Part shown: one piece after another, positions 1-9,320 of the stretch
How the letters are laid out: each line of letters begins with the position of its first letter
Numbering within the stretch: the first letter of the stretch is position 1
Made by a program: the position numbers and the translations under genes
Source of the DNA: Selaginella moellendorffii
Lineage: Eukaryota > Plantae > Lycopodiophyta
Assembly (NCBI RefSeq): GCF_000143415.4
Contig: NW_003314608.1
Span: 1-9,320 of the forward strand
Reading direction: 5' to 3'
Length of the DNA stretch: 9,320 nucleotides
Notes under the pieces: model-generated
What the model saw: only the letters and a program-made list of their open reading frames with translations
What the model was told of the DNA's origin: nothing
The model's database searches: none

Positions 1-147
1 CAGGTCCGACTCTGTTGGTTGGCTAAGGGAATCACACCACATGTTGATTGACATCTGACTGGTCCAGTTTGCTCCCGCTGGGCTCGACCCGAGGGGTAGG
101 GTGTCAAGAGAGCAGGGCTCTCGGGAGAGCTATGGCTCTCAGCTTCC

Positions 148-186
148 GTTCACGAGGGCGTGAACTTGCAGGGAAACGTGGTGGAT
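148..186 (+). promoter_or_regulatory. Hairpin + PPT-like module upstream of LTR-A
   Basis: GTTCACG-AGGG-CGTGAAC perfect stem (148-165), then purine-rich AGGGAAACGTGGTGGAT abutting TGT. Confidence 0.7.
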
Positions 187-380
187 TGTAAGCAACCAAA
201 GGGAACGACTCGAGAGACGATCCATGGGGTTCAAATATAGAGGGAAAGGGCCCATGAATAAGAGTGCACCCCCTTTTCCAATCGGTTAAGGGTCTTGGGA
301 TATTTGGGGTTAAGCGTCCTTGGGTTTGAATAGTACTGGGCTGGGTGACCTCCCGGGAAGTCCAAACTAAGGAGCCTACA
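187..380 (+). mobile_element. LTR-A (Cassandra-like, 5S-containing), copy 1
   Basis: Starts TGTAAGC right after GTGGTGGAT and ends GCCTACA (6/7 terminal inverted repeat), 2 nt before a tRNA-iMet PBS. The 3' end is firm; the 5' end is inferred from the PPT and terminal inverted repeat. Confidence 0.82.
309..363 (+). promoter_or_regulatory. 5S rRNA-derived fragment (Pol III type-1 internal control region: box A, IE, box C) inside LTR; not a full 5S gene
   Basis: GTTAAGCGTCCTTGGGTTTGAATAGTACTGGGCTGGGTGACCTCCCGGGAAGTCC aligns ungapped to about nt 51-105 of plant 5S rRNA as I recall it (GTTAAGCGTGCTTGGGCGAGAGTAGTACTAGGATGGGTGACCTCCCGGGAAGTCC; 48/55). The 5' 50 nt and the 3' end of 5S are absent. 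Confidence 0.93.
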
Positions 381-382
381 TT

Positions 383-394
383 TGGTATCAGAGC
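383..394 (+). promoter_or_regulatory. Primer binding site (tRNA-iMet), PBS-a
   Basis: TGGTATCAGAGC, the canonical complement of the plant initiator tRNA-Met 3' end, 2 nt after ...TACA. Confidence 0.93.
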
Positions 395-2864
395 TGTTCC
401 TTAGTCCAACTTTTATTGGTGCTCAAGTATATCACCACTAGTGTTGGCATCGGAAGGTCCGAGGAGTGGGCCTATCCTTGAGGAGTAGCAAGTCGGGAAG
501 ACATGGCTCTCCATTACAGTTCATGTATAAACTTGTAGACGAGGTGGTGGATAGAAAAGGGCCAATAATGGAACGACTTTGGGATCTTGGGAACAGTGCA
601 AGGTTTTCCTCATTGAGTTGAGGATGTGATCCGGATGAGCATTTGTCTCAGCAAATTGGCTAAGGTTGTTGTGGTAAACAACTAAAGTTGGGATCACGGG
701 AAAGATAGAGACTCCAAAACAATAAAGGAGTCACAAAATTATCCTCATATAGTTGAGGTTGGTGCTCATGAATGTGAGACCAGAGGTAATGACCGTGGGA
801 GGTCAAATACGGAAGAGGACTCAAGTCCTTGAAATGGTAGCCAGGGCTACCTTTAATAAATGCTGGAACAACTCAAGGAGTTGGGGGGTGTACTTAGGGA
901 TGAGTTGGTGTTCTCATCACATGGACAAGTAGTCCTAAGGGGCAAAGGTTGCCCCCAGAGAACAAAATCAAGTGTCGGAGTAACACTTGTGAAAATAGTC
1001 CTTTTGAGTAGGACAGGAATGCAAGAAGTGTATTCTAGTGAGCTAGTGCCTCATAAGTAGGACCTTACGGGTCTGTGGATTAACTAAGTCCAAAACTGTT
1101 GGATGACTCAAGTAGAGTCAACGGATGGTCCTAAAAGGACTGATGGAAGCATTTGGACTGAGGTGTGTTGTACCCCACAAAGGATGGGAGGGGATCATAG
1201 GATCCAAGGATGAGAACAGAGGGTATCTCATCGATGGCAAAATGTGCCATGCTAAAGTTATGGGAAAGGTGTTCCCAGAAGAAAACAACTTTGACATAAA
1301 GTTGTGTGTGACCTCTATGGTGCAGTGCTAACGGATGGTTGGCATGAGAAAGAGCGGTGTTGGTCTTGGCAAAGACTTAGACACGAAGGGGAAATGTCAT
1401 AGAGGTAGGCTCGTGGAGCCGATGGTGTGGAGACACCAAATGTGCCAAGGTGTGATACCTTGAGGCTATGTTGGTGGGTTCATGAGAACCCCTTGCCAAA
1501 GGAATCCCAATGGAAATGGGAATAGCATAGCCTAAGCTGCAGAGCATGCAGTTGGAGTGTGGTGACCCAGATAATGATGGAGGTGTGGAAGCACTAGCAA
1601 TGAGTTGTAGGACTTGACAACTATGAGGCAACTAAGCAAGAGATGCAAAATAACTGGTTAAACGGGTAAAAGGTAGCTACCCAAGACTTCTTAATAGCAT
1701 AGGGAAGTTGGATATACCCTTACGGGGGATAAGTTGCTTGTGTTGCGATATAGTAAGTCAATGTCATAAAAGGAAATACTCATTGTCAAGGAAGCCATCA
1801 TTGGGACACCCAAACACTCTAGAACACCAGAAGGTGGTGTTTGATGTCGCGAGGGCAATGGATAAAGCCCAAGGGACTAAGTCCCTAGCGAATGATGGAT
1901 AGAAGGTGCTATCCAAATGTCCAAGGTTGCGGAGACAGGAGAGGACTGTTTACCCAAGTTGGACAAAGCCAAAAATGGAATTTTGGCAAGGCTAGGGATG
2001 GGCATATAAAGGCCCATAAGCAACAACGTAATCCCAGTGTGTGGGATTATAGGGTGAGCATACCTGGATTGAGGAACCACTCCCTAGGCTATTGGGTAGG
2101 TTCATCCCTAAGAATACTTGCTAAAGCATGATAGAAAGTGCAAAGCTATCCTCCTGGTCTGGAGGAGAATGACCAAAGGAAAGGTGTGAAGCCAAAAAGC
2201 AAGAAGTAAGGGGATAGAACCGAACCGTAGGAATCAAAGGGCATAACCAAGGTTGGTTATGCCAGCTGGGAGTGGAGAATCAAGTGGGGGCTTGAGGGTG
2301 TTGCCGCTAGCAACCGTGATGCCATGGAGAGTCTAAAATATGGAATTGTCCATGTTAGACTATGTGGCATTTGGAAGGCTTGCAAAAAGGGAGGCCTTAG
2401 CAAGCTGAGGGACAGAGTTCCTTCAAGGTTCCCAAAGACGATTCTAGGTAGCTTAGTACCTAGAAAGGCCAAGTGTAAATGGTTCATGGAATGCGCGAAA
2501 TCAGAGTGGCGCAGCAGAAGCGTGGTCTTGAAGCTTGCCATGAGGCAAGGCTATCAAGGTTAGGGAAGTAGTTCTTGAGTGTTCAAAGAGAGGGCTTTGA
2601 ACGAAAGTCGATGGTCAAGGACTTTCACGCTTATGCAGGAACCATGTTACAGTGGTCGGAGGACTTGCCAAGCGAGATTGGCACGTCGGGGGAACAAATA
2701 CCCTAGTTGAAGGTGATAACTTCAAAAAGGGTGGGCCATGGGGCCGAGCATGGAGGAGTCCATGCATGATCACAGACATGTCAAGTGAGAGGACTTGGCA
2801 GTGTGGAGGAACTAGGTTCCTAAGCTGTGATCTGTAGCGCGCTTTAAAAATAATTTGGTGCACC

Positions 2865-2979
2865 GGCGTGGGGAGTCACGCCAGGCATCTTGTGTGATGC
2901 CGTCCGTAGATGCATATACGGAGGTTGGGTTCGAGTCCCGACCCTCTAGTGCTTGGGTTCGAGTCCCAAATCACTAGGG
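2865..2979 (+). other. Five back-to-back hairpins with two T-loop/B-box motifs (tRNA-like structure)
   Basis: Stems at 2865-2882, 2884-2901, 2903-2922, 2923-2943 and 2944-2979; GGTTCGAGTCC at 2928-2938 and 2956-2966. Confidence 0.55.
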
Positions 2980-3000
2980 TGTGGTGATGGTTTGGAATAT

Positions 3001-3270
3001 GAGGACACTCATATTTCGGTGGTCATGGACTCTCAGTGGGGAGACTGGTTTGGGCACACCGCCAAGCGAGGGATGCCTCGGAGTCGTGATGCACGGTTAG
3101 ATTGCTTAGTGTGAAAGCTCGGCATATCTAACTTGAACGCTTTGGTGCGAGTGGCACCAAGGACGTGGTGAGTGAGATGGGGACACCTAATCTCAGTTGC
3201 TATGGACCCTTGGCCGGAAGGGCTGGCTTGGGCGCACCGCCAAGTGTGGGGGATGCCCCCGGGGTCGTAG
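3001..3270 (+). repeat. Diverged direct duplication, offset ~178 bp
   Basis: CTGGTTTGGGCACACCGCCAAGCGAGGGATGCCTCGGAGTCGT (3045-3087) vs CTGGCTTGGGCGCACCGCCAAGTGTGGGGGATGCCCCCGGGGTCGT (3223-3268); upstream GGACAC and ATGGAC words are also shared. Confidence 0.75.
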
Positions 3271-4297
3271 TTAACAAATTAAAGGTCTGGAAGACCTAGT
3301 ACCTATTGGCAAACCTGTTAAGGTGCCGAGGTGAGATCACTAGGTGATCTTGTGGCTAAATAAGGACAAGGTCCTTGTTTGGGTTAAGGAATAAGGTTCC
3401 TAGTTCAAAGTGTTGATTTGAACTATTGATGATGGTGTGGCTTGGTCAAGGTGACCAAGTGGGAAAAGCACCCTAGGGAAATGAGCTATGTCATTGCGAT
3501 GGCATAGTGTGTCCAAGGAAAGTAGTCTCTAAAGAGACCCATGGGAGGGTCACAAAGTTGGGCCGTGGATAGAGCCCACAGCAGAAGATGCTAAAGAGAC
3601 TTACTAGGGGCGAACACCCTAGTCTTGGCAAAGCAGAGCCTTTGCTAAGGAATCACAAGAATACCTCAAGGAGGGAAGTAGAGATTCGATATTGCTTGGT
3701 GCAACAATCAATGGATAGGAGCAAAAGATGAGTGGCCAAGATAGGGCCGTGGAATCCCTTGGAAGGAATCCAAGTGACAAAGTTAGGCGAGGAACACTAA
3801 TGTGTTGGACGCTAACAAATTCCGGAAAAGGAAGTGTGTTTCCAAGGATGAATTCCGAATTGCTCTGATTTGGCGAAAGTGGAAGCTCCAAGGGAGGGAG
3901 CGGTAAGGTAGCCAAATGATAGGGCCATGGACAGCCCTAGCACAAAGTATGATAAATGGAACTTAGTGCCCAAGGTGGCACGAAATAGAAGAGAGGATGA
4001 TGGTGCCCTCAAGTAATGAGCTTCCTAGGATGGGGAAGTGGAGTTGCACAATCTGTGCAATGCAAGGTGTTGGAGACACCTAGGAAATTGACTTCCAAAA
4101 GTCAAAAGAGTAAAAGTTCCAAGGTGCAAACGTTCAATAGATGGAAATTGAGACTACTTGAGAAGGAGTAGCGGGATTGACTTAGAGAAGGGTCTCTAAA
4201 AGGTTTAGCGAGAACTAAACCAATAAAAGGAGAGAACCACTACATGTGGTCCAATTAGTCTCTAAGTTGGAGAGACAACCCCTTTAAAGGATAGGTA

Positions 4298-4432
4298 AGG
4301 CATGGTGAGCCTTTGGTGTCAAACCATTGAGGAATATGCAAAAGGCATGGTGAGCCTTCAATGGCAAACCATTGACGAATATGGAGAAGGCATGGTGAGC
4401 CTTCAATGTCAAACCATTGACAAATATTGGCT
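4298..4432 (+). repeat. 45-bp tandem repeat x3
   Basis: AGGCATGGTGAGCCTT...CAAACCATTGA..AATAT starting at 4298, 4343 and 4388. Confidence 0.92.
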
Positions 4433-4490
4433 AGGTGCCAAGGATGGAAATGGTAACACATGCGGGTGTTACTTTATAAAATGGTTTACC

Positions 4491-4531
4491 GTTCGATGAG
4501 GACATCGAACTTCGTCTATGGGTGGTGGAGT
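4491..4531 (+). promoter_or_regulatory. Second hairpin + PPT-like module
   Basis: GTTCGATG-AGGA-CATCGAAC perfect stem (4491-4510), then GGGTGGTGGAGT abutting TGTGAG. Same layout and same 21-nt hairpin-to-TG spacing as 148-186. Confidence 0.65.
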
Positions 4532-4755
4532 TGTGAGACACAAAATCCCTAGGCCCCAAAGTAGAGCCGGAAAGGGTGCCACGTGGTAGTGGCCGAAGCG
4601 AGAGCCAAACGAGCGTAACACGTTTGGACCAAAAGCTCCGACTTGAAAAGACAAGAGCGGGAGTGGAACTCCCAACGAAGTGCTCGAGGAACGAGCACGA
4701 AGCGAGCAAAAGGCGAGGCTCCAAAAAGGGACCCAAAAGGACCAACACATGACAC

Positions 4756-5210
4756 GTGGGAGTCCGAAGTGGAGTCCGAGATGGACCCGAGATGGAGTCC
4801 AAGATGGAGTCCGAAGTGGAGTCCGAGGTGGACCCGAGATGGACCCGAGTTGGAGTCCGAAGTGGAGTCCGAGATGGACCCGAGATGGAGTCCGAGATGG
4901 AGTCCGAGATGGAGTCCGAGGTGGACCCGAGATGGACCCGAGTTGGAGTCCGAAGTGGAGTCCGAGATGGACCCGAGATGGAGTCCGAGATGGAGTCCGA
5001 GATGGAGTCCGAGATGGAGTCCGAGGTGGACCCGAGATGGACCCGAAATGGAGTCCGAGATGGAGTCCGAGATGGACCCGAGATGGAGTCCGAGATGGAG
5101 TCCGAGATGGACCCGAGATGGACCCAAGATGGAGTCCGAGATGGAGTCCGAGATGGACCCGAGATGGAGTCCGAGATGGAGTCTGAGATGGAGTCCGAGA
5201 TGGAGTCCGA
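4756..5210 (+). repeat. Minisatellite of 12-mer GATGGAGTCCGA and 11-mer GATGGACCCGA in higher-order units
   Basis: Parsed directly: higher-order units at 4756-4848, 4849-4941, 4942-5046, 5047-5127 and partial 5128-5210. Confidence 0.95.
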
Positions 5211-5228
5211 AGTCGAGACCGAGACCGG

Positions 5229-5260
<32 letters not shown>

Positions 5261-5366
5261 TCGGGACCGAGACCGAGACCGAGGCCAAGGCCGAGACCGA
5301 GCCCGAGCCCGAGTCCGAGTCCGAATCCGAGTCCGAGTCCGAGTCCGAGTCCGAGTCCGAGTCCGG
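5211..5366 (+). repeat. Hexamer microsatellite (GNCCGA) x ~26
   Basis: GACCGA run grading through GGCCGA/GCCCGA to a GTCCGA run. Confidence 0.95.
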
Positions 5367-6371
5367 AGCCTGAGAGGGTGAAAGCCCAAAGCATTCGTCT
5401 CCCAGACCCTGGGGGGTTTGGTGAGCTCCAAAAGTATAGTAGGGGGAGGACTGTAGTGGAGCCAGTTTGGCTAGGAAAGGCCAGTTTGGCCCAGGAAGGC
5501 CGGACCCAGTGTTGGGTGATGAGCTGCCCACTGAGAAGTCCAAGACTAGAGTGAACACGGACCGACAAGTGGGGTAGCTTGGTGAAGTGTTCAAGAGCCG
5601 GCTCTAGTTCCCCCGGGAGATCGACTGGCCGATGCTCCCAGTCCAAGTGTGGGTGGCACTACCTACTTGGATACCTGGTGTGGCTCAACGGAACCCGCTC
5701 TAAGCCCATGGCTAGAGCACCCAAGGGCAGAAGGCGAGGAGAGTACCCAGGTGGCTCGTTTAAGGCCACGGTGTTCCGAAATGTTGTCCCAAAGGCCCAG
5801 ACTGTGGAAAGGAAGAGGAGCAGTCCTCTGGGGTAGTGACCAAGGACACAGTCGTGTGGTGAGGAAGTCCCAGAGGACCGTGGGACTTAGTGGTCGGGCC
5901 TGTGGGTCTCGATCCAGTGGCAGTGTTGGCAAACATGGCCAGGGGCAGAAAGGGACTTAGTGGGGACTGACAGAGGGATATTGGGGAAGGCTATTCCCCT
6001 TGTCGATGGGCATCCTAAGGATGCTAAGGAGTGGATCTGAGATGACCACTCACGGATGGTTTGCCTAGTCTTGGAGAGCCAAGACGGTGATGCAAGTGGT
6101 ATTGGACTACCAGTGTGGCAAAGGTGATTGGGCATGGCCTTAGCGTAACGGGCTGCTATGTCGGTGGTACCTTTGAGTGTCAGTCATGGGATCGGACACG
6201 TGGAGCACTTGGACCAAGTGCAAATGTTGAGTGGCATGGATGCCATTCTCGGGGCTAGCAAGTCCCAAGTCCTGGATTGGACTTATGGAGGTTGTGAATG
6301 AGACTCCTCCAAGTGGTCAGAGGTGTGGTTAAGTGACTAAAGTAGAATGGAAAATTTAGTCGCTTACAATT

Positions 6372-6383
6372 TGGTATCGGAGC
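6372..6383 (+). promoter_or_regulatory. Second primer binding site (tRNA-iMet, one G-U wobble), PBS-b
   Basis: TGGTATCGGAGC (11/12 to canonical), 3 nt after the LTR-end-like GCTTACA (6362-6368). Confidence 0.8.
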
Positions 6384-6535
6384 GGTCTCAGGTCCGACTC
6401 TGTTGGTTGGCTAAGGGAATCACACCACATGTTGATTGACATCTGGCTGGTCCAGTTTGCTCCCGCTGGGCTCGACCCGAGGGGTAGGGTGTCAAGAGAG
6501 CAGGGCTCTCGGGAGAGCTATGGCTCTCAGCTTCC

Positions 6536-6574
6536 GTTCACGAGGGCGTGAACTTGCAGGGAAACGTGGTGGAT
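6536..6574 (+). promoter_or_regulatory. Hairpin + PPT-like module upstream of LTR-A copy 2
   Basis: Identical to 148-186. Confidence 0.7.
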
Positions 6575-6768
6575 TGTAAGCAACCAAAGGGAACGACTCG
6601 AGAGACGATCCATGGGGTTCAAATATAGAGGGAAAGGGCCCATGAATAAGAGTGCACCCCCTTTTCCAATCGGTTAAGGGTCTTGGGATATTTGGGGTTA
6701 AGCGTCCTTGGGTTTGAATAGTACTGGGCTGGGTGACCTCCCGGGAAGTCCAAACTAAGGAGCCTACA
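6575..6768 (+). mobile_element. LTR-A (Cassandra-like, 5S-containing), copy 2
   Basis: Identical by eye to 187-380, with the same flanking PPT and PBS. Confidence 0.82.
6697..6751 (+). promoter_or_regulatory. 5S rRNA-derived internal control region fragment, copy 2
   Basis: Identical to 309-363. Confidence 0.93.
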
Positions 6769-6770
6769 TT

Positions 6771-6782
6771 TGGTATCAGAGC
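6771..6782 (+). promoter_or_regulatory. Primer binding site (tRNA-iMet), PBS-a copy 2
   Basis: TGGTATCAGAGC after the second LTR-A. Confidence 0.93.
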
Positions 6783-9320
6783 TGTTCCTTAGTCCAACTT
6801 TTATTGGTGCTCAAGTATATCACCACTAGTGTTGGCATCGGAAGGTCCGAGGAGTGGGCCTATCCTTGAGGAGTAGCAAGTCGGGAAGACATGGCTCTCC
6901 ATTACAGTTCATGTATAAACTTGTAGACGAGGTGGTGGATAGAAAAGGGCCAATAATGGAACGACTTTGGGATCTTGGGAACAGTGCAAGGTTTTCCTCA
7001 TTGAGTTGAGGATGTGATCCGGATGAGCATTTGTCTCAGCAAATTGGCTAAGGTTGTTGTGGTAAACAACTAAAGTTGGGATCACGGGAAAGATAGAGAC
7101 TCCAAAACAATAAAGGAGTCACAAAATTATCCTCATATAGTTGAGGTTGGTGCTCATGAATGTGAGACCAGAGGTAATGACCGTGGGAGGTCAAATACGG
7201 AAGAGGACTCAAGTCCTTGAAATGGTAGCCAGGGCTACCTTTAATAAATGCTGGAACAACTCAAGGAGTTGGGGGGTGTACTTAGGGATGAGTTGGTGTT
7301 CTCATCACATGGACAAGTAGTCCTAAGGGGCAAAGGTTGCCCCCAGAGAACAAAATCAAGTGTCGGAGTAACACTTGTGAAAATAGTCCTTTTGAGTAGG
7401 ACAGGAATGCAAGAAGTGTATTCCAGTGAGCTAGTGCCTCACAAGTAGGACCTTACGGGTCTGTGGATTAACTAAGTCCAAAACTGTTGGATGACTCAAG
7501 TAGAGTCAACGGATGGTCCTAAAAGGACTGATGGAAGCATTTGGACTGAGGTGTGTTGTACCCCACAAAGGATGGGAGGGGATCATAGGATCCAAGGATG
7601 AGAACAGAGGGTATCTCATCGATGGCAAAATGTGCCATGCTAAAGTTATGGGAAAGGTGTTCCCAGAAGAAAACAACTTTGACATAAAGTTGTGTGTGAC
7701 CTCTATGGTGCAGTGCTAACGGATGGTTGGCATGAGAAAGAGCGGTGTTGGTCTTGGCAAAGACTTAAACACGAAGGGGAAATGTCATAGAGGTAGGCTC
7801 GTGGAGCCGATGGTGTGGAGACACCAAATGTGCCAAGGTGTGATACCTTGAGGCTATGTTGGTGGGTTCATGAGAACCCCTTGCCAAAGGAATCCCAATG
7901 GAAATGGGAATAGCATAGCCTAAGCTGCAGAGCATGCAGTTGGAGTGTGGTGACCCAGATAATGATGGAGGTGTGGAAGCACTAGCAATGAGTTGTAGGA
8001 CTTGACAATTACAAGGCAACTAAGCAAGAGGTGCAAAATAACTGGTTAAACGGGTAGAAGGTAGCTACCCAAGACTTCTTAATAGCATAGGGAAGTTGGA
8101 TATACCCTTACGAAGGATAACTTGCTTGTGTTGCGATATAGTAAGTCAATGTCATAAAAGGAAATACTCATTGTCAAGAAAGCCATCATTGGGACACCCG
8201 AACACTCTAGAACACCAGAAGGTGGTGTTTGATGTCGCGAGGGCAATGGATAAAGCCCAAGGGACTAAGTCCCTAGCGAATGATGGATAGAAGGTGCTAT
8301 CCAAATGTCCAAAGTTGCGGAGACAGGAGAGGACTGTTTACCCGAGTTGGACAAAGCCAAAAATGGAATTTTGGCAAGGCTAGTGATGGGCATGTAAAGG
8401 CCCATAAGCAACAACGTAATCCCGGTGTGTGGGATTATAGGGTGAGCATACCTGGATTGAGGAACCACTCCCTAGGCTATTGGGTAGGTTCATCCCTAAG
8501 AATACTTGCTAAAGCATGATAGAAAGTGCAAAGCTATCCTCCTGGTCTGGAGGAGAATGACCAAAGGAAAGGTGTGAAGCCAAAAAGCAAGAAGTAAGGG
8601 GATAGAACCGAACCGTAGGAATCAAAGGGCATAACCAAGGTTGGTTATGCCAGCTGGGAGTGGAGAATCAAGTGGGGGCTTGAGGGTGTTGCCGCTAGCA
8701 ACCGTGATGCCATGGAGAGTCTAAAATATGGAATTGTCCATGTTAGACTATGTGGCATTTGGAAGGCTTGCAAAAAGGGAGGCCTTAGCAAGCTGAGGGA
8801 CAGAGTTCCTTCAAGGTTCCCAAAGACGATTCTAGGTAGCTTAGTACCTAGAAAGGCCAAGTGTAAATGGTTCATGGAATGCGCGAAATCAGAGTGGCGC
8901 AGCAGAAGCGTGGTCTTGAAGCTTGCCATGAGGCAAGGCTATCAAGGTTAGGGAAGTAGTTCCCGAGTGTTCAAGGAGAGGGCTTTGAACGAAAGTCGAT
9001 GGTCAAGGACTTTCACGCTTATGCAGGAACCATGTTACAGTGGTCGGAGGACTTGCCAAGCGAGATTGGCACGTCGGGGGAACAAATACCCTAGTTGAAG
9101 GTGATAACTTCAAAAAGGGTGGGCCATGGGGCCGAGCATGGAGGAGTCCATGCATAATCACAGACTTGTCAAGTGAGAGGACTTGGCAGTGTGGAGGAAC
9201 TAGGTTCCTAAGCTGTGATCTGTAGCGCGCTTTAAAAATAAGTTGGTGCACCGGCGTGGGGAGTCACGCCAGGCATCTTGTGTGATGCCGTCCGTAGATG
9301 CATATACGGAGGTTGGGTTC

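Follow-up and report, generated by a model that had tools for sequence, protein, structure and literature searches.

Cassandra, a gene-less terminal-repeat retrotransposon in miniature (TRIM) whose long terminal repeats (LTRs) contain a 5S rRNA-derived part, forms LTR-ID-LTR-ID arrays (ID, internal domain) with up to 13 LTRs, and read-through transcripts covering several elements were reported for them (PMC7215508). In pear, about 20% of the intact Cassandras carry 3-5 LTRs and appear to transpose in this form (PMC4079214). The TRIM arrays of sugar beet reach 21 LTRs, and occasional chimeras there have an extra LTR from another family (PMC13570524). Tandem Cassandra/TRIM arrays have been proposed to give read-through transcripts and to undergo unit-wise transposition (PMC7215508, PMC4079214, PMC13570524), and two elements can become fused when reverse transcription switches templates between co-packaged RNAs (Sabot and Schulman 2007, PMC1950507). 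Here, a 9,320-bp stretch of DNA from Selaginella moellendorffii (contig NW_003314608.1, positions 1 to 9,320 of the forward strand; hereafter the window) was analysed, in which a Cassandra LTR (LTR-A) alternates with a second, LTR-like block (LTR-B). We read the window, with moderate confidence, as part of an array in which a composite LTR-retrotransposon chain that encodes no proteins is repeated head to tail; the chain would be built from Cassandra modules and this second LTR-type block. Each ingredient has been published, but the combination, a Cassandra LTR alternating regularly with an unrelated 1.8-kb LTR-type block as the repeat unit of a 6.4-kb array of fern-type character, was not found described in the literature.

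We found that the window covers 1.46 turns, i.e. at least 1.46 units, of a direct repeat whose period is 6,388 bp. The two copies (1-2932 versus 6389-9320) are 99.15% identical and differ by 25 substitutions (21 transitions and 4 others), with 0 indels. This 25-site difference is real divergence and not the product of read error or of a circular wrap-around. The mismatches are unevenly spread, 1 in 1-1035 versus 24 in 1036-2932 (binomial P 2.7e-4), which suggests gene conversion or crossover among the members of the array. Each unit runs in the order LTR-A, the primer binding site (PBS) PBS-a, a diverged internal domain (ID'), a stuffer (X), a hairpin with a polypurine tract (PPT''), LTR-B, PBS-b, a canonical internal domain (ID) and again LTR-A (Table 1). 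The A-to-A register measures 6,582 bp and the B-to-B register 8,225 bp, and a complete cis-set of LTR, PBS, PPT and LTR is present in each. An earlier note on this DNA had listed these motifs, counted two complete sets of LTR-type borders per unit and proposed that the composite propagates from A to A or from B to B; all of its motif positions and their order were confirmed, the PBS, PPT and terminus positions give the two border sets, and the cis-set was found complete for both registers. Its further claim, that the switches between A and B fall exactly on PBS/PPT borders without a target-site duplication (TSD), also held: no TSD was found at the inner borders, where the two 5-nt flanks do not match each other (TGGAT/TTTGG at A, GGAGT/ATTTG at B). 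Nor is there a 5-nt flank duplication around the A-to-A unit, and the chain continues past both window ends. The window contains a plant-type primer site for the initiator methionine tRNA (tRNA-iMet) and a plant-type 5S fragment but no genes, and its CpG observed/expected ratio of 0.4-0.7 is depleted, as in methylated eukaryotic genomes.

The arrangement of the window is close to that of the tandem multi-LTR Cassandra/TRIM arrays (PMC7215508, PMC4079214, PMC13570524). LTRs and internal domains alternate, neighbouring internal domains share LTRs, a PBS or PPT lies at each inner border, inner TSDs are absent and the units are near-identical. However, the published arrays have one LTR type and units of about 0.4-0.6 kb, whereas the LTRs here do not belong to a single family: the two LTR-type blocks (194 and 1,837 bp) are unrelated by sequence, and the unit measures 6.4 kb. 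In the chimeric TRIMs of sugar beet (PMC13570524), LTRs of different families are likewise joined to internal domains at structural borders, which was ascribed to template switching or recombination; those chimeras are described as single copies in a dicot, whereas here the heterologous pair itself is what the array repeats, and the Cassandra involved is of the fern type. The 3-LTR complexes of Sabot and Schulman (PMC1950507) are similar in that two internal domains share an LTR, and their origin was proposed from two co-packaged RNAs. Those complexes are diagnosed by flanking TSDs and highly similar outer LTRs of one family, whereas the outer ends of the present chain lie beyond the window; their model also requires R homology, which A and B do not have. 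Compared by description, large retrotransposon derivatives (LARDs) resemble the chain in their long non-coding internal domain, in their strong predicted RNA/DNA self-structure and in mobilisation in trans, which would apply here by analogy; unlike the chain, they have long LTRs of one type.

The smaller of the two LTRs was identified by its 5S part. The Rfam 5S match in LTR-A (290-377 and 6678-6765) has 30.3 bits and E 0.0047, with a 32-nt internal deletion in the match. The published Cassandra pattern of box A, 18 nt and box C was found at 308-350 and 6696-6738 only, with 2 mismatches and 0 expected, so that a 5S rRNA-derived part with the two boxes at this distance is a property of LTR-A alone. 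A tRNA-iMet PBS lies just inside the 5' LTR, as in Cassandra: it is exact, starts 2 nt past LTR-A after a TT spacer, and lies 5 nt past the 5S part. According to Kalendar et al. (PMC7215508), the distance between the PBS and the 5S part is 8 bp in ferns versus 173 bp or more in Brassica. The LTRs of fern Cassandras measure 187-208 bp and their internal domains 190-193 bp (Maiwald et al., supplement of PMC10853983), and the sizes found here, 194 bp for LTR-A and 206 bp for ID, fit those tabulated elements. The Cassandra literature reports the element as absent from gymnosperms (Kalendar et al.; Maiwald et al.). By these features, LTR-A is a fern-type Cassandra TRIM LTR; the earlier note had gone as far as a Cassandra-sized partner, and the 5S part, the boxes and the sizes make it a fern-type Cassandra in fact. 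The likeness to the fern-type TRIM (Kalendar et al. 2008, 2020; Maiwald et al. 2024) includes the LTR of about 200 bp with its 5S part and box A-18 nt-box C, TGGTATCAGAGC a few nt past the 5S part, an internal domain of about 190-206 bp that ends in a PPT, and the lack of genes. Unlike that TRIM, the window holds no A-ID-A monomer, i.e. no internal domain with LTR-A on both sides; the canonical ID has LTR-B at its 5' side, and LTR-A precedes the diverged ID' and a 3.9-kb stuffer. No hammerhead ribozyme, as expected of a retrozyme, was found in the LTR, and no ribozyme family was matched in the whole window at E up to 1. A tRNA-like sequence inside the LTR, as in a Helenus-type TRIM, was found by neither ARAGORN nor Rfam.

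The borders of the two LTR types were then compared. The motif TGGTATCAGAGC is named as the tRNA-iMet PBS in PMC7215508, and its matches elsewhere in the window all need 3 mismatches, which is the chance level. Both pre-LTR hairpins have stems of 7-8 bp and the form GTTC...GAAC, lie 20-21 nt before the TG starts and are followed by the GGTGGTGGA tract; their inner stem pairs differ on both arms, and the pairing is retained. The pre-A and pre-B borders align with a score that was reached by 3 of 1000 dinucleotide shuffles, and within the entire unit each is the best non-self match of the other. The short motif GGTGGTGGAKTGT alone gave 10 matches against 8.5 expected and was not above chance, and the evidence for a PPT border is its position plus the alignment, not the motif alone. 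The folding energies of the pre-LTR hairpins were unexceptional (z -0.5 to -1.2) and were rejected as evidence of function. The earlier note had relied on a hairpin and a PPT before each TG; the positions and the border alignment bear this out, but hairpins are common throughout the unit and weigh less than had been assumed.

Table 1. Positions of the repeat, LTR, primer-site, hairpin, polypurine and internal features in the window
Feature	Position	Strand	Description
Direct repeat, first copy	1..2932	+	Partner 6389-9320; period 6,388 bp
ID, copy cut by window start	1..186	+	Same as 6389-6574 except 1 mismatch; PBS-b expected just upstream
Hairpin upstream of LTR-A	148-165 = 6536-6553	+	GTTCACG/CGTGAAC, perfect
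LTR-A, copy 1	187..380	+	194 bp, TGTAAG...CCTACA; 5S rRNA-like 290-377; box A-18 nt-box C 308-350
ID', diverged second Cassandra internal domain	381..552	+	PBS-a to PPT', decayed hairpin
PBS-a	383..394	+	TGGTATCAGAGC, 12/12 to plant LTR-retrotransposon tRNA-iMet PBS
PPT'	541..552	+	GAGGTGGTGGAT, fossil border; next letters AGAAAAGG, not TG
X, non-coding stuffer	553..4488	+	3.9 kb, purine-rich, hairpin-dense; 23 perfect hairpins (stem at least 7 bp)
Hairpin upstream of LTR-B	4491..4510	+	GTTCGATG-AGGA-CATCGAAC, perfect; position homologous to 6536-6553
PPT''	4518..4531	+	ATGGGTGGTGGAGT, directly abuts TG of LTR-B
LTR-B, LTR-like block	4532..6368	+	1,837 bp, TGTGAG...CTTACA; once in window
Microsatellite block in LTR-B	4759..5365	+	TRF (Tandem Repeats Finder): period 12, 44.8 copies; period 6, 25.3 copies
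ID, complete canonical Cassandra internal domain	6369..6574	+	206 bp; hairpin 6536-6553, PPT 6559-6574
PBS-b	6372..6383	+	TGGTATCgGAGC, 11/12; ATT spacer after LTR-B
PPT of ID	6559-6574	+	Precedes LTR-A copy 2
LTR-A, copy 2	6575..6768	+	194 bp, identical to 187-380; 5S-like 6678-6765; boxes 6696-6738
Second ID' copy and first 2.4 kb of X	6769..9320	+	Cut by window end
PBS-a, copy 2	6771..6782	+	Exact TGGTATCAGAGC

LTR-B was recognised by its borders. The block has TG...CA ends with short inverted termini, PPT'' lies directly upstream and PBS-b directly downstream. Its first 14 nt and last 17 nt resemble the termini of LTR-A, although this resemblance is not significant on its own. No significant similarity between LTR-B and LTR-A was found otherwise (z 0.9, -0.1 and 0.7), the longest word common to both is 9 nt, which equals the shuffle mean, and LTR-B has no 5S remnant by Rfam or by the box A/box C pattern. 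The possibility that LTR-B is an expanded LTR-A was rejected on the lack of similarity, the lack of a 5S remnant and shared words at chance.

The internal regions are less simple than the LTR order suggests. We found that 364-552 aligns end to end with 6352-6574, from the last 17 nt of the LTR through the PBS, the domain and the decayed hairpin to GGTGGTGGAT. ID and ID' have roughly 65% identity, with z of 14.7 and 12.2, and nhmmer gave E of 1e-4 and 5e-4 with a two-row hidden Markov model that was built from these two non-coding paralogous stretches and run against the window itself. By this alignment there are at least three PPT-type borders per chain, one of which is a fossil. The earlier note had described a single internal region of 4.1 kb; it does follow LTR-A and PBS-a and does end at a hairpin and PPT, but it is composite, with ID' and its fossil PPT' followed by X. 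The view that the internal region of the large element is foreign to Cassandra failed, in that this region begins with the Cassandra-derived ID'. No open reading frame (ORF) of note was found in X (553-4488), and no gag/pol remnant, coding capacity or Pfam domain was detected in any open piece of X on either strand. An LTR-A-like 5' fragment after PPT' (553-676) had been considered and was withdrawn (z 0.2 when tested alone).

Any mobility of the gene-less composite would have to come in trans, from an autonomous partner that supplies reverse transcriptase and integrase and recognises the similar TGTRAG...CYTACA ends, the common tRNA-iMet primer and the common hairpin-PPT. A read-through RNA that extends from an LTR as far as the following one of its type could be copied as an ordinary element, with the other LTR type as cargo. 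The units at this locus would have been multiplied whole, as DNA, through unequal crossing-over or gene conversion, because the divergence is even, in register and free of indels, yet patchy; multiplication of this kind has been described for Cassandra arrays. The A/B joints would have been made once, long ago, and would not be regenerated in each generation. Their likeliest origin may be a plus-strand strong-stop DNA that landed on the shared PBS of a co-packaged second RNA; such a strand transfer is preferred because homologous recombination would not easily join unrelated LTRs exactly at PBS/PPT borders. A template switch between two co-packaged RNAs is a plausible route that has been published (PMC1950507), and the features of the window fit routes at the DNA level equally well.

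The composite chain has to be weighed against several other explanations. The earlier note supposed that RNAs of a Cassandra-sized TRIM and of a large element were packaged together and that switching at PBS and PPT produced an A/B heterodimer, which propagates as a unit. This is possible, but we consider it unlikely. The joints coincide exactly with PBS and PPT borders and lack a TSD, the primer is common, the hairpin-PPTs are related, the LTR termini are alike, and both template-switch complexes and hybrid TRIMs are documented; all of this speaks for such a heterodimer. However, the internal region of the "large element" starts with a Cassandra domain and a fossil PPT and so is not the domain of an independent family, the chain is old and partly decayed, strand transfers based on R homology cannot link A and B, whose longest common word is a chance one, and the internal regions are duplicated in the window, which is unexpected within one retrotransposed unit. 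Since ID and ID' are deeply diverged and one border is a fossil, a recent clean heterodimer of two active families is unlikely. A more far-reaching version would be a retroelement family with two LTR types in which replication itself regenerates the A/B joints, the heterodimer is the unit of selection and X acts as packaging or dimerisation RNA. It might proceed by a plus-strand transfer in trans for which co-packaged A- and B-type RNAs use their common tRNA-iMet PBS, or through amplification and re-insertion of a 6,388-bp circle that holds a single A and a single B; we regard this version as improbable. Alternatively, LTR-A could be passive cargo of a LARD-like B-to-B element (8,225 bp) that captured ID-A-ID', with a B-I-B-I complex (I, internal region) formed by unequal recombination between LTR-B copies. 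ID-A-ID' corresponds exactly to what a Cassandra array contains between a PBS and a PPT, the internal domain is long, non-coding and strongly self-folding, as in the description of LARDs (PMC7215508), and complexes with at least 3 LTRs from LTR-LTR recombination are common. Yet one LTR-B is visible, PBS-b is imperfect whereas PBS-a is perfect in both copies, and the LTR-A copies are identical and have kept their 5S promoter boxes; we give this explanation a low probability.

Nothing in the window would still be mobile if it came from an ancient tandem array of Cassandra in which insertions, deletions and replacement altered the LTR slots in place and a three-slot stretch was then amplified as a satellite-like higher-order repeat. 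The borders would then be ancestral and no special event to form the joints would be needed; ID and ID' are deeply diverged, PPT' is a fossil, the last 17 nt and the first 14 nt of B resemble A, and the patchy identity suggests concerted evolution. Moreover, TRIM arrays have been discussed as seeds of satellite-like repeats (PMC13570524). On the other hand, neither LTR-B nor the beginning of X showed a remnant of LTR-A or 5S (z 0.9, -0.1, 0.2 and 1.0, with Rfam blank and the boxes absent), and the chain looks maintained, with PBS-a, PPT and LTR-A intact and the pairing of the pre-B hairpin kept through changes in both arms. We give divergence in place a low probability. Finally, the window ends inside a 2.9-kb terminal direct repeat, as an assembly that wrapped around a circular molecule or mis-joined repeats would leave it. 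The copies, however, differ at 25 sites, with a 21:4 transition bias, 0 indels and an uneven spread, and each joint is a biologically meaningful border, and such an artefact is hardly credible.

Several observations weigh against the composite chain that we favour. PBS-b is mismatched and ID' and PPT' are decayed, so that parts of the chain may be dead. The 5S score of LTR-A is under the Rfam gathering score of 38, and 4532-6368 is a single copy in the window and LTR-like by its borders. The 1.46 turns are also compatible with a single duplication or with two very long LTRs of a giant element, and the data from the window do not directly separate multiplication at the DNA level from multiplication by reverse transcription. 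Copies of B, X or either joint outside the window were not found in the collections scanned. Specifically, exact-pattern scans of viral, metagenome and genome contigs gave no relative of the LTR-B/PBS-b joint, of the 3' interior of LTR-B or of the 5S-to-PBS Cassandra pattern; a metagenome match (L001) was a bacterial coding sequence and was rejected as a chance match. None of the five ATG ORFs was present in the protein collection searched, and nothing was found by word searches for which the longest open pieces of LTR-B and of X served as queries.

If the chain is mobile, it would be an example of non-autonomous retrotransposons that swap or recruit whole LTRs and keep only the primer site, the PPT and the ends recognised by integrase, and it would account for the emergence of new TRIM and LARD families. 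Should it be no more than a local array, it would still show a Cassandra array that has grown into a 6.4-kb satellite-like repeat in a genome of fern type. In either case, LTR finders that pair like LTRs would misannotate the locus as a 6.6-kb "Cassandra" or as an 8.2-kb LARD, depending on the register.

The unit as a whole is rich in short perfect hairpins. With stems of at least 6 bp and loops of 3-8 nt, 68 hairpins were counted versus 7.1 +/- 2.8 in dinucleotide shuffles; with stems of at least 7 bp the numbers were 29 versus 1.9, and with stems of at least 8 bp 10 versus 0.4. Every stem is different, the loops are 72% purine, and 200-nt windows of the unit have a mean folding z of about -3 on both strands. 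This 10- to 15-fold excess could reflect the RNA structure of a LARD-like internal domain, or it could come from a mutational process. A fourth, fossil border at a GTTC...GAAC hairpin (2581-2602) was considered and rejected, as its scores were reached by 60 of 1000 and 629 of 1000 shuffles.

Further modules were observed in X. The stretch 2502-2523, and its copy 8890-8911, matches the 5' half of eukaryotic initiator tRNA-Met in the sense direction at 21 of 22 positions (0 expected). This is the same tRNA that the PBS complements, and the string is found in papers on iMet tRNA fragments; neither ARAGORN nor Rfam found a full tRNA. Three adjacent 6-bp hairpins lie at 2865-2922, and the tRNA B-box-like GGTTCGAGTCCC, repeated twice, follows at 2925-2980. 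Together, 2865-2980 looks like a degenerate tRNA with a long variable arm or a module like a short interspersed nuclear element, on which ARAGORN and Rfam make no call. A module of about 190 bp is present as a diverged tandem duplication (2951-3087 and 3139-3268, 67% identity). Shortly before the pre-LTR-B hairpin, 4297-4431 consists of 2.9 copies of a 45-bp unit, the first of which contains GAGCCTT-TGGTGTCAAACC, which is faintly like the end of LTR-A and the PBS, with 3 PBS mismatches, i.e. at chance. A PBS-like TTGGTGTCAAACC at 4313, which would have completed a third internal domain, lies inside this tandem repeat and was rejected with its 3 mismatches as a chance match; the middle of that region has no similarity to ID.

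Within LTR-B, the final 45 nt (6324-6368) can pair as a hairpin (TGTGGTTAAGTGACTAAA ... TTTAGTCGCTT-ACA), and its 5' arm contains the box-A-like GGTTAAGTGACT, whose resemblance to the LTR-A 5S part did not reach significance. The microsatellite occupies a third of LTR-B. It is composed of 12-mers of the GGAGTCCGAGAT type and of CGAGAC hexamers, has a higher-order period of 93 bp and gives rise to long spurious ORFs on both strands.

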